Assembly (NCBI RefSeq): GCF_006345805.1
Contig: NW_021826231.1
Coordinates: 1-36,025, forward strand
Reading direction: 5' to 3'
Source: Octopus sinensis
Taxonomy: Eukaryota
Length of the DNA stretch: 36,025 bases
Positions 24,830 to 34,990 of the stretch are shown piece after piece. The notes beneath the pieces are model-generated. The model ran no database searches. It was not told the DNA's origin and was given only the letters and a program-made list of their open reading frames with translations. The translations under genes were made by a program, and so were the position numbers. The stretch's first letter is position 1. Each line of letters starts with the position of its first letter.

Positions 24830-25029
24830 TCACTTTGCGTCTAATGACAGACATTCCATCGCAGCGACACATTCAGCTTCTTCAAGAGCTGCACGTAATG
24901 TTGCGTGTGTCCGTGTTTCTGGGTCGCAATTCCTGTACCATTCGTAAAGCATCAGATAGCCTTGTTTTACAGCGTCAATAGACTCATCATCAATTTTCAG
25001 TTTAGTTGTATCAACTCCTAAAAAAATTG
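24830..25029 (-). CDS. Terminal exon: Death domain C-terminal part
   Basis: Acceptor ttgtgtcttttgcag, phase 1. Encodes (A)IFLGVDTTKLKIDDESIDAVKQGYLMLYEWYRNCDPETRTHATLRAALEEAECVAAMECLSLDAK*, with TGA at 24830-24832. The pattern LG…Y-ML-EW…T…L-AL is Death-fold-like. Confidence 0.85.
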
Positions 25030-25289
25030 CTGCAAAAGACACAACAATAAGAGATAAATGCAACAACCTTAACAATATTAACAATAATATAAAAGATGTG
25101 TGTTGTTATAAACATAACAAAGAAACTATTTCAAGAGAGAAATATAAAAAAATAGCTAAGAAACAAGAAAAATATAAGACATTGTTTTCTATTTCTAGGG
25201 ATGATGAGAAAAATAACAAAGTGGTTAAATTAAAGGTGATTTAAAAAAAAACATTAATTGAAGTTTACACTTGAGAATCTTTTAAGGTA

Positions 25290-25800
25290 AACCGATGGCA
25301 GATGTGTTTGTGAAGGCAAAAGTGCATGAGAACCTAAAGAATCAACATAGGGTACCAACAGGCAAACCATTTGATCCATTCATTTCCTCTGCTCAATATT
25401 TCTGGGATAGTTGTGGGGATAGAGTCCCCTGGCATTTCTTCCATTGGGGCCTATCAGATGTAACCATCATTACATATTTTGGTTGGATTCCCAAGCATCA
25501 ACAACTAAGTCTATGGATATCATCCAACTATTTACTGCTTGGTCTACCCCTGGGTCTCCTACTCCATTGGTTTGACTTTGAGAACCTGTCTTGTAATTCA
25601 TTCCTGCGACATTCTGATCACATGTCCTAGGTACCAGAGATGTGAAGAAGTGGCTCAACCTGGAGAGACTCCCAAATCTCTGAACTATAAATCCTATTGG
25701 GCAACATTACTCCAGAGACCCTTCAGAGAAATCCCATATATCTGTCTTAATCTGGCAGATTTCAGATCTGATATTCAAAGGTCATGAAAGTAATGTCTCT
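25290..25800 (-). mobile_element. Degraded RTE-clade LINE 3' fragment in an intron
   Basis: Minus frames give ESLQVEPLLH…GHVIRMSQE.ITRQVLKVKP…, with stops. Confidence 0.65.
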
Positions 25801-26535
25801 CTGTGAAATCAATCACCTTGCAAAGTTCCCAAAATGACACTGAAAATCAAATGAATAATGATAGACCAACAGTCGATTATTCTCAGTCAAATCCAATCCT
25901 TTTTGAATCTACTCCAGATTCAATCAATTCTCCTGAACCCATTCAGTTATTCTTATGTCTCAGTGAGAGAGAGAGACCAGCCATGGTCTGGCTTCACTTG
26001 TGAATATTCATTTTCTGTCAAATTTCCTTAAAGCCATTCTCTCTTTTTGGATGTGGGGAATATGATATGATTTGGCTGTGTCACCCCTACACTAAGTCTG
26101 TTTTTACTGAAGCATTTACAAACATATGTCATGTTGTAAAGTTATTCCAATATGGCAATATAAATTGCAATTATCACATTCAAACACAATAACCCAATCC
26201 CTAATGGCTTCAAGAAGACCCTAACTCATGGTCTTTTGATGGAGTAAAGACGAACCAAAAACGTTGTCATTAACTCAGCTGTTTACCCTTAACATATTTT
26301 TCTTCTTTCTTCCAATATTAAATGCTACTTGTATTTTCTTGTGTATCCATAATTACCAACCTCAGTGGATACTTTATGAAATACCAGTAATATCATTAAT
26401 AGAATTTATTTTGCAGCTAACCATTCCACTGGAAATTAGGAATGTAACCTGTTCTCTTTCATCCTGACAAATGAAATAGCTCAGGTGAATGTAAAATTTA
26501 TAGAAATCAATTAGGTAGTGTAATTTTATACTCAC

Positions 26536-26607
26536 CTACTTGCCACCAATCTCTTCCTAACCTCTTAGCCACTCTCAGAAGATCCTTCTCCTTCAGCTCT
26601 GGACTCC
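26536..26607 (-). CDS. Internal exon (72 nt): Death domain helices 1-2
   Basis: tatttatttcag|GG…GTAG|gtgagt, phase 1/1. Encodes (G)SPELKEKDLLRVAKRLGRDWWQV, which joins AIFLG to give the L..LA..LG.DW..LA..LG Death-domain pattern. Confidence 0.88.
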
Positions 26608-26854
26608 CTGAAATAAATATTTCCAAATTTTATAATTTATACTAAATTTCTTAATCTTTATTCTTGAGGCATGCTTATCATCAATGGTCAACTGGTGACC
26701 ACTATGATTTTGGTCAACCTTTTTAATCTATGTAATAGCTCAATATTTTGGTCCACAACAAAATAGATTCAACTTCTTAAACTTCGTCTCTCTATCAAGA
26801 CATCCTACATAATCTAACAATGTTGCATTTATCACATTTAATTATCATTTGATA

Positions 26855-27860
26855 AGACTATTTTTCTCACAGTTCTCTATTTCCCTTCTTATATCTGTAC
26901 CAAACCTGTGACATGACTTCACTCACCAACATTTTTCTCATCTTCTGCTTAATTCTAATGTCAAACAAGGTGTTTTCCAAAGACCTAATCACAAATACAC
27001 GGCAGACAAATTCATGTAGGATAAACATACACCTGACATCTTTGTTAAGGGTTGATGTTGGTAATCTTGAATCGTAACTCCGCACATCCCAGTTCACAAG
27101 AACATCATCTGATTCAGGAAATATTTTAAGACTCCTTAATAAAGAAGTTCTTTAAAACCCTTTATTCCCCAAAAGTTTTGGCTTATCTATTGCTTATAAG
27201 ATGTCTTCTTTTTGTGCTATTATCTCGATGCCTCTACTCTTGTGGGACAATGAGGTAGTGTACCATCACCCTAAACAGTTTCTCTTTAACCTTTGACATG
27301 CTTTCTTCTGCTACTTTGAATTTCACTTATTTCTGCTGAGCTTTGGCAAATGACGGCAACATTTATTTGCCTTCACCCTATTCTTGACCAACTAATTAAT
27401 TAATACAGTCTATTCAGAACTATTTGCATATCCTTTTGCTCTGTTGTTTGTTTTCTTATGTCATCCATTAATGTCGTCTTAGGGGACTTCACTCGAGTTA
27501 TTTCTTCTGATCAATCTGCTGATCTAATAAACATTTCCATAACAAGTACAAACAAAATGACTGATATTGTGCAACCCACGGCAATTCCAGTCTCCAGACA
27601 ATGCGAGTCTGTTGTGAAATATTCTGTCCTGAAGCACATTTTGAAATTATTACAGCAACTCTTCATTAGATTCTCAATCTTTTCTCGTATATAAAAGACG
27701 TCCGTTGTTTTCAGCAACAACTCGTGTAGTACAGAACGATAAGCATTAACCTGATCAAGCCATACAACATTCAAATCGTTTTTGTTCTTCTTTGTATCTT
27801 CTATCGCATCCCAGATTCAAAATGCAAGTTCCACACATTCAGGGATTCCTGTCTTCTCTC
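26855..27860 (-). mobile_element. Degraded RLE-type LINE RT fragment (HERO/NeSL-like)
   Basis: GIPECVELAF*IWDAIEDTKKNKNDLNVVWLDQVNAYRSVLHELL…LETGIAVGCTISVILFVLVME. GCTISVILF is the RT motif typical of HERO-like elements. Stops are present. Confidence 0.7.
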
Positions 27861-33793: not shown

Positions 33794-33816
33794 TATATAT
33801 ATATATAATATATATA

Positions 33817-33866
<50 letters not shown>

Positions 33867-33867
33867 T

Positions 33868-34277
33868 TCTCTCTTTTCTCTTTTTACTTGTTTCAGTCAT
33901 TTTGACTGCGGCCATGCTGGTGCACCGCCTTTAATCGAGTAACACGACCCCGGGACTTATTCTTTGTAAGCCCAGTACTTATTCTATCGGTCTCTTTTGC
34001 CGAACCGCTAAGTGACGGGGACATAAACACACCAGCATTGGTTGTCAAGCAATGCTAGGGGGACAAACACAGACACACAAACATACACACACATACATAT
34101 ATATACATATATACGACGGGCTTCTTTCAGTTTCCGTCTACCAAATCCACTCACAAGGCTTTGGTCGGCCCAAGGCTATAGTAGAAGACACTTGCCCAAG
34201 GTGCCACACAGTGGGACTGAACCCGGAACCATGTGGTTGGTAAACAAGCTTCTTACCACACAGCCACTCCTGCGCCT
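33868..34277 (-). mobile_element. SINE family A, full length, well preserved
   Basis: Minus-strand head aggcgcaggagtggctgtgtgg…ggttcagtcccactgtgtggcaccttgggcaagtg and tail gactgaaacaagtaaaa. Confidence 0.88.
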
Positions 34278-34814
34278 ATATATGTATATATATGTATATA
34301 TATATATATATACATGTATGTATCTATGTATGCATGTATAAATACGTATGTATGTATGTATGTATCCATGTATGTACACTCATTGTATGTGTTTGTAGGC
34401 GATTTTCTCAGGATAGCTCACATGGACATGACTGGGTGGGACAGAGAAAACAGAGGAACAATCTGTTGGTAGACAGATAAATTCCATCACTTCACTATTT
34501 ACTTCTACATTTTCTCATTCGTCCCAAATCTTTAAAATAGGGAATTGAGAGAGGTGGGTGGGGATTTTAGGAGAGGTATAACAGTCAACGCAACCAATCA
34601 TTTGAATGTAATCAAAATAGTGTCCTTTCTTTTAATTAGCTTAACATCTGCATATTGTTTATTGTTCTTCTTACTGTTGTTGTCTAACCTTTCATTAAGC
34701 TACTAAGACAGTATAATGTATCAGTAGAATTAAAACAATAGAAACATATAAACATGGTTATATACAAAACAGAAAATGTAATGGTTTATCTTGTCATTGC
34801 CAGTGAATACTTAC

Positions 34815-34990
34815 TGCGGTGAGAATAACGTCTTTAACATCTTTTTTAAATCTTCCTCTTCTATTAGGTCCAATGGTGTTCTGCCAATTTTGTTTTTACA
34901 GTAAAAGTTGGCCCCGTGGTGGGCTAGGTAGCTGGCAACTACCACACCAGAGCACCTTTCTTCGTTTCCCAGTTTCAGCTCTACGCAGAA
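34815..34990 (-). CDS. Internal exon (176 nt): last ankyrin repeat and linker (Mind bomb-like)
   Basis: catcatttgtag|TTC…CCGCA|gtaagt, phase 0/2. Encodes FCVELKLGNEERCSGVVVASYLAHHGANFYCKNKIGRTPLDLIEEEDLKKMLKTLFSP(Q). GA…N..G.TPLDL is an ankyrin signature, and the phase matches the RING exon. Confidence 0.88.

Follow-up and report, generated by a model that had tools for sequence, protein, structure and literature searches.

What is a gene whose last exons encode an ankyrin repeat, a RING finger and a Death domain in that order, and what might its product do? The question is posed by the window, as we call the whole 36,025-nucleotide stretch of Octopus sinensis DNA analysed here, which is the entire unplaced contig VCDQ01007368.1 of assembly GCA_006345805.1. 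On its reverse strand, between positions 34990 and 24830, an initial annotation made from the letters alone had read the five-exon end of a hidden gene for a lineage-specific ligase resembling Mind bomb (MIB). Death-fold proteins and RING ligases form the core of animal innate-immune and cell-death signalling, and lineage-specific expansions with new domain combinations are known from oysters, amphioxus, cnidarians and echinoderms. The five exons are the 3′ end of a real protein-coding gene, already annotated as LOC115227419. Taken jointly, the best explanation of the evidence, and one that we hold to be probable if not strongly so, is that this 3′ end belongs to an Octopus family of ankyrin-RING-Death proteins, and that the product serves, as we infer, as a RING ligase docked through its Death domain.

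The five exons fit together as a single reading frame. Exon 1 (34815-34990, reverse strand as are all the others; 176 nt), the third coding exon of the full gene, carries the last ankyrin repeat or cap and the linker to the RING finger (residues 1-58 plus 2 nt); exon 2 (30893-31035; 143 nt) holds the entire C3HC4 RING finger; exon 3 (28970-29020; 51 nt) encodes a 17-residue linker cassette, VGPNSSNMEVQMVAGPV; exon 4 (26536-26607; 72 nt) encodes the N-terminal part of the Death domain, GSPELKEKDLLRVAKRLGRDWWQV; and exon 5 (24830-25029; 200 nt) adds the C-terminal two-thirds of that domain and the TGA stop at 24832-24830. An AG stands directly before each of the five exons, at the end of a pyrimidine-rich tract (CAG or TAG), and the donors after exons 1 to 4 read GTAAGT, GTAAGA, GTGAGT and GTGAGT; exon 1 itself lies between the acceptor TTTGTAG/TTC and the donor /GTAAGT (slashes mark the exon borders). 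The AG/GT borders, exon lengths and phases first proposed thus hold on the sequence, as does the 213-residue product: the joined exons make 642 nt, that is, 213 codons and TGA, with no internal stop. A chance open reading frame is ruled out as an explanation, since the probability of 213 stop-free codons at the local base composition of this strand is ~4e-8. The TAG that holds the acceptor AG closes the frame of exon 1, which therefore starts exactly at 34990 and extends no further in the 5′ direction; the original placement of this border was correct, and the gene model P0004 on a second contig, described below, uses the same acceptor.

The gene can no longer be called hidden, because RefSeq annotates LOC115227419 with the identical four junctions and names relatives of it 'MIB2-like'. 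The RefSeq protein P0002 ('uncharacterized protein LOC115227419 [Octopus sinensis]', 163 aa) has 100% identity to residues 51-213 of the spliced peptide, and so an independent gene model shares all four junctions and the stop. Its coding sequence runs from 34840 to 24830 on the reverse strand, with the ATG at 34840 inside exon 1; the annotated start falls on an internal methionine because the contig ends before the true 5′ exons. A tblastn search of the window with all the proteins that we fetched matched only the five exons, and found neither further exons of the family nor a second family gene elsewhere in it.

The RING finger encoded by exon 2 retains its eight zinc ligands (C60, C63, C75, H77, C81, C84, C93 and C96) at C3HC4 spacing, and the spliced product reaches 30.3 bits with the Pfam family zf-C3HC4_3 (PF13920), above the cut-off of 27. 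Its best sequence matches among solved structures are the RING fingers of CGRRF1, cIAP2, cIAP1 and XIAP, and its structure matches in Foldseek are cIAP2, IDOL and XIAP. By its sequence, the domain is accordingly best placed within the RING-HC zf-C3HC4_3 type (the IAP/MIB/MYLIP/CGRRF1 group).

The Pfam profile Death (PF00531) covers residues 132-207. For the window protein alone its score stays below the Pfam cut-off; the Death-domain call holds despite this because the scores of relatives, a family profile and structure matches agree. PF00531 is matched at E<=0.01 by 16 of 30 relatives (best 6e-10), and relative P0057 scores 43.9 bits. A profile built from eight Death domains of the family matches 31 distinct PDB sequences, all of them Death domains, including those of RIPK1 (1.7e-7) and ankyrin-3 (1.9e-7), and also of PIDD, Fas, CRADD, FADD, TRADD and THOC1. 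Modelled by AlphaFold2 on the family alignment, P0002 has a mean predicted local distance difference test score (pLDDT) of 72, with per-block values of 72-90 over P0002 residues 80-160, the Death-domain part. Compared with the PDB by Foldseek, this model matches the Death domains of RIPK1 (template modelling score, TM, 0.74), FADD (0.80) and ankyrin-G (0.71), all with probability 1.00, and its PDB matches are limited to Death domains and IAP/IDOL-type RING fingers. The predicted structure thus presents the C-terminal domain as a Death domain with a compact, all-helical death fold. At the other end, the window encodes only the terminal ankyrin repeat or cap, and ankyrin proteins in the PDB match residues 18-55. 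The spliced product therefore does combine ankyrin sequence, one complete RING finger and a C-terminal Death domain, as had been read from the open frames.

Between RING and Death domain, the linker encoded by exon 3 is predicted to be disordered (pLDDT <50 for model residues 58-74), and one isoform of the nearest paralogue leaves out the equivalent exon: P0005 equals P0001 minus exactly that segment. In other paralogues the RING-Death linker consists of one to several near-identical cassettes of 17-26 residues, some of them containing cysteine (EAPKFEDRCVQTEATCQELGAASQAI, NRTFEVKETQTLAEPVV, CPKSEEKAVQAVVESVV), with EAPKFEDRCVQTEATCQELGAASQAI present in one to three copies and CPKSEEKAVQAVVESVV in four to six (relatives P0036, P0038, P0021, P0075, P0069 and P0006). 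From their sequences, these cassettes appear to be duplicated, alternatively spliced mini-exons, and exon 3 of the window is one such linker cassette. The cassette exons of paralogues (HHGGGRRMDQALKGPIR, EAPKFEDRCVQTEATCQELGAASQAI and others) are absent from the introns of the window.

That the 5′ exons lie beyond the window, as the initial annotation had supposed, is confirmed by a twin contig that supplies them. Contig VCDQ01005868.1 (locus L001, 43850 bp) is 99.7% identical to the window and collinear with it over 21 kb (window 36025-14984 against L001 13906-34935); the pair represents an uncollapsed haplotype or a very recent duplicate, probably the former. L001 continues for 13.9 kb past the end of the window and carries the gene model P0004 ('MIB2-like', 231 aa). 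The first coding exon of P0004 (L001 3106-3117) reads ATGCTGAAGCAG and is followed by GT; its ankyrin exon ends at ~11369 with the donor CAG/GTAAGT, which joins in phase 0 to the acceptor TTTGTAG/TTC, equivalent to position 34990 of the window. The coding sequence on L001 begins at an ATG ~11.8 kb upstream of the equivalent of exon 1, with in-frame stops directly upstream of the ATG, and no additional family exons are detectable in the 11 kb upstream on that contig. The two 5′ exons add 74 residues, giving a composite protein of 287 residues, whose Pfam scores are 38.3 bits for Ank_4, 32.5 for Ank, 32.4 for Ank_2, 29.7 for zf-C3HC4_3 and 17.0 for Death. Judged from this composite, the full product would be a protein of ~287 residues with two to three ankyrin repeats, one C3HC4 RING of the IAP/MIB type and, after a short disordered linker, a C-terminal Death domain. 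The last exon of L001 has a 1-bp deletion (ACTAAAC to ACT-AAC, equivalent to window position ~25000) that yields 'TTN*', so that P0004 ends in 'GVDTTN' with its Death domain cut off; the window copy is intact. Either a genuine null allele or an error in the consensus may lie behind the deletion.

Does this protein stand alone? Three database searches returned relatives from Octopus only, namely from Octopus sinensis, O. vulgaris and O. bimaculoides: 45 matches with the 213-residue peptide as query, 80 with a profile of RING and Death domain together, and 14 at E<=10 with a profile of the Death domain only. A further HMMER search of 1.84 billion representative sequences used a 297-position profile that included ankyrin columns; its top 150 matches were dominated by giant ankyrin-repeat proteins, and among those that matched over the full span, the ten that were looked up by name were all from Octopus. 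The first reading had called the ligase lineage-specific, a view which every search upheld, and on sequence evidence the ankyrin-RING-Death combination seems so far restricted to the genus Octopus. Of the 116 Octopus relatives that we fetched, counting isoforms, 41 combine ankyrin repeats, one RING and a full Death domain, the rest being partial models or lacking one module; longer relatives, such as P0052 (545 aa), P0057 (505 aa) and P0086 (653 aa), only add ankyrin repeats. In O. sinensis the family is spread over ~30 contigs, of which many are small and unplaced, and in O. vulgaris over at least eight large scaffolds. Haplotigs like the window contig inflate the locus count, and the family comprises dozens of uncharacterised loci. 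We found nothing specific about it in the literature on octopuses or other cephalopods. The names given to its members in the source databases are inconsistent (MIB2-like, MIB1-like, ankyrin-3-like, 26S proteasome subunit 10-like, RIPK1, PIDD1-like, 'Death domain-containing protein'); they mislead, and conceal that the proteins form one family.

Several relatives depart from the common layout. P0175 of O. sinensis, the only relative with two RINGs in the Pfam scan, has ankyrin repeats and both RINGs and no Death domain, which is the C-terminal layout of Mind bomb; its sequence hints at a possible ancestral form in which a Death domain later replaced the second RING. In O. vulgaris, P0035 has RING and Death segments of the family joined to leucine-rich repeats and contains two C-terminal halves of the Death domain, and P0045 has the last exon of the family in an unrelated context; either the Death-domain exon has been shuffled or these are gene-model fusions. 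At an 80-kb O. vulgaris locus (L003; CATOCA020000001.1, 3.25-3.33 Mb), where one gene model of the family spans 60 kb, two regions (59039-59155 and 70308-70496) resemble the last Death-domain exon, so that the gene may have alternative 3′ exons or a partial copy next to it.

How the modules have changed can be followed by comparing the window with a third O. sinensis contig, VCDQ01009215.1 (L004, model P0001), which is 96-97% identical to it across the gene, introns included. We compared exon identities with those of 300-bp flanks and counted changes by the Nei-Gojobori method (L004 segments 13076-13853 and 17807-18472 against window 34815-34990 and 30893-31035). Exon 1 is 88.1% identical and its flanks 97.5% (Fisher p = 2.4e-6), so that it is five times more diverged than its introns; it has 19 non-synonymous and 2 synonymous changes, a ratio of non-synonymous to synonymous rates (dN/dS) of 2.65. 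The RING exon is 94.4% identical (flanks 95.3%), with 7 non-synonymous and 1 synonymous changes (dN/dS 1.67), several of them around the last zinc-binding cysteine pair. The last exon is identical at 199 of 200 positions (flanks 97.3%), and the linker and Death domain together have 2 non-synonymous and 1 synonymous changes (dN/dS 0.57); the overall dN/dS against this paralogue is 1.9. The two variants of exon 1 (FCVELKLGNEERCSG... and YLKDLKLGKKERYS...) both occur again, in further paralogues and in O. vulgaris, which makes exon exchange between paralogues at least as likely as positive selection in place. Fourteen family members with distinct RINGs, compared pairwise, share on average 46% of their residues in the RING, 59% in the terminal ankyrin exon and 76-77% in the Death domain, exon 5 (76% for the segment that it encodes) being the most conserved exon in the family. 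The pairwise identities mark the Death domain as the constant module and the RING and ankyrin repeats as variable ones.

We can therefore ask what such a protein might do. The link to innate-immune or apoptotic adaptors that the initial annotation had suggested is a putative one. In the explanation we prefer, a Death-domain-docked RING ligase, the protein would join, through its Death domain, oligomeric signalling assemblies built on such domains (of the MyD88/IRAK, FADD/RIPK or PIDD kind), where clustering would bring the RINGs together and allow recruitment of a ubiquitin-conjugating enzyme (E2); the RINGs would then ubiquitinate components of the assembly, or clients bound by the ankyrin repeats, and so tune immune or cell-death signalling. 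Within this scheme the Death domain would act as the constant docking module, with the fast-changing ankyrin repeats and RING as variable modules. IAP-type RINGs act as dimers, and for this reason clustering driven by the Death domain could switch the ligase on. There are two precedents: vertebrate MIB2 is reported to ubiquitinate RIPK1 and cFLIP (PMC7815719), and cIAPs, like the 'TII-DD-RING' IAPs of oysters (PMC8917759), pair a death-fold domain with a RING. The order of RING then Death domain would be an independent route for coupling ubiquitination to Death-domain assemblies. Cephalopods are reported to be poor in TRADD-N expansions (PMC8195603), and IAPs to be least expanded in Octopus among the molluscs studied (PMC8917759). 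A conserved Death domain combined with diversifying ankyrin and RING modules would offer a useful entry into little-studied cephalopod immune signalling.

A bolder version, which we put forward tentatively and think possible rather than probable, is that Octopus has in this family its own multigene set of immune or cell-death regulators with a 'variable head' and a 'constant tail': the ankyrin and RING exons would diversify by positive selection, exon exchange or both, and the near-identical Death domains would plug into one signalling hub. If true, the family could be the cephalopod equivalent of expansions seen in sessile marine invertebrates (IAP, TRIM and Death/TRADD-N), which cephalopods reportedly lack or have to the least degree.

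Five points weigh against a docked ligase of this kind. The Death score of the window protein alone is 17.4 bits against a cut-off of 22.6, which is the one part of the predicted Death-profile match that failed while the relatives, the family profile and the structure match bore out the rest. The RING of the window does not lie at the extreme C-terminus, the normal place of IAP-type RINGs. The high conservation of the Death domain could result from gene conversion rather than functional constraint. The window contig is probably a redundant haplotype, and its twin has the truncating 1-bp deletion in the Death domain. Finally, the window copy, which lacks the usual proline and arginine of the RING, may on sequence grounds be a weak or inactive ligase.

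The last of these points leads to the rival explanation that survives best, though we consider it unlikely: that the window copy is a non-catalytic adaptor or decoy, which has kept its Death domain and ankyrin repeats with a RING unable to activate E2~ubiquitin. Such a protein would exert its effect by taking up places in Death-domain assemblies, or through pairs formed with active paralogues, and would not itself be a ligase. In RING fingers, the proline of the CPxC motif and the residue after the last cysteine (an arginine 'linchpin') help to bind and activate E2~ubiquitin. In the alignment, the window has CLKCG in place of CPMCR (CGRRF1), CPICR (cIAP2) and CPMCY (XIAP), and so lacks both the E2-contact proline and the basic or aromatic linchpin; P0001, the 96%-identical paralogue, carries CPMCR, and seven of the eight differences in the RING exon are non-synonymous. 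Some relatives have also lost the last cysteine pair of the RING and kept the Death domain: 16 proteins (mostly isoforms of one locus) were classed as 'Ank+DDfull', their RING going unmatched to the zinc-ligand pattern that we used. However, the window RING has all eight zinc ligands and passes the Pfam cut-off, and some active RINGs lack an arginine at the critical position, XIAP having a tyrosine there. The CLKCG type, moreover, is shared by several paralogues and by O. vulgaris (P0006, P0012 and P0014), which marks it as a maintained type and not a one-off lesion.

Less likely again, and in our view rather improbable, is that the window copy, whether an uncollapsed haplotype or a fragment duplicated very recently, is redundant or in decay and makes no functional protein. 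Its identity and collinearity with VCDQ01005868.1 and the frameshifting deletion in the last exon of that twin would fit such a history, as would the close similarity of the third locus in introns as well as exons, the overall dN/dS of 1.9, and the many family models that are partial and sit on small unplaced contigs. However, the five exons of the window are intact, with canonical splice sites and no stop, and an assembly error could account for the deletion in the twin; the near-perfect match of the last exon in more diverged flanks, and the low dN/dS of the linker and Death domain, also speak against decay. Weakest of all, and to our minds hardly credible, is that these exons end a true Mind bomb (MIB1/MIB2) orthologue with Mib_Herc2, ZZ and REP exons further upstream: RefSeq does call relatives 'MIB2-like', the succession of ankyrin repeats and a zf-C3HC4_3 RING does resemble the C-terminal half of MIB, and a MIB1 chain in the PDB matches residues 10-52, but we reject the proposal because the coding sequence of the twin starts only ~11.8 kb upstream, with stops just 5′ in frame, the 5′ exons encode ankyrin repeats only, Mib_Herc2 and ZZ were found neither in the family proteins scanned nor in precomputed Pfam lists, and a single RING is followed by a Death domain instead of two or three terminal RINGs. 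Beside these alternatives, the docked ligase of an Octopus family is the reading that we prefer.

The remainder of the window holds microsatellites and tandem and dispersed repeats, and no tRNA or Rfam match was found in it. On the forward strand, 266-6165 contains fragments of one or two retrotransposon copies of the kind without long terminal repeats (LINE-type), with open reading frames matching RVT_1 at 1658-2737 (1.8e-32) and 4958-5527 (1.5e-7), and zf-RVT at 5512-6165 (26.9 bits, just under the cut-off of 27.5); these fragments probably account for the strong A-over-T skew of 0.25-0.43 at positions 1-6000. A 184-bp tandem repeat occupies 18159-18779 (3.4 copies, 96% matches). An element of ~410 bp occurs both in intron 1 (33842-34249) and at 21153-21560, the copies being ~89.5% identical, and a 493-bp segment of intron 1 (31698-32190) has an inverted copy at another place on the twin contig; these dispersed elements are probably SINE-like (short interspersed nuclear element) or other interspersed repeats. 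Short tandem arrays at 9552-9701 (forward strand) and 16056-16206, with periods of 63 and 68 bp, have mutually reverse-complementary units (TGCCGGTGGCACGTAAAAAGCAC and GTGCTTTTTACGTGCCACCGGCA); apparently one repeat family is present here twice, in opposite orientations.

How, finally, does the octopus protein compare with known systems? To Mind bomb proteins it is alike in that ankyrin repeats lead directly into a zf-C3HC4_3-type RING, and RefSeq labels the family 'MIB2-like' or 'MIB1-like'; vertebrate MIB2, moreover, is reported to act on the Death-domain pathway proteins RIPK1 and cFLIP (PMC7815719). The octopus protein differs in that its one RING is not C-terminal but precedes a linker and a Death domain, while MIB proteins have two or three C-terminal RINGs, and its family members are 160-650 residues long. 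MIB proteins have roughly 1000 residues. Mib_Herc2, ZZ and REP were not found in the composite 287-residue protein, in relatives scanned by Pfam (up to 653 aa) or in the Pfam lists precomputed for the 45 and 80 relatives. Of the 'MIB-like E3 ligase' first proposed, therefore, the resemblance in the ankyrin and RING part stands, and membership of the Mind bomb family does not, nor do the Mib_Herc2 and ZZ domains expected upstream.

With cIAP1 and cIAP2 (BIR-UBA-CARD-RING) and oyster BIRC11 (TII-DD-RING, PMC8917759), the octopus family shares a death-fold domain and an IAP-type C3HC4 RING in one polypeptide, and it is, like the molluscan IAPs, a lineage-specific expansion. The order is different, RING then Death domain in octopus and death fold then C-terminal RING in IAPs, and the N-terminal module consists of ankyrin repeats; no BIR domain was found in Pfam scans of the window protein, the composite or the relatives, which places the family outside the IAPs. 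Ankyrin repeats N-terminal to a C-terminal Death domain are shared with the ankyrins ANK1-3, with ANKDD1A/B, with NF-kB p100/p105 and with DAPK1, and the Death domain of ankyrin-3 was one of the two best PDB matches of the family profile; however, these proteins lack a RING, and the ZU5-UPA that precedes the Death domain in ankyrins was not found by Pfam in the window or composite protein. RIPK1, PIDD and FADD provide the best profile and structure matches of the C-terminal domain, and RefSeq names some family fragments that have only a Death domain 'RIPK1' or 'PIDD1-like'. The octopus protein differs from all three in lacking a kinase, ZU5/UPA/LRR and DED, the similarity being confined to a Death domain of ~85 residues at ~20-30% identity. 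What is new, then, is the unusual order of RING followed by Death domain in an uncharacterised family, built from kinds of domain that were already known.

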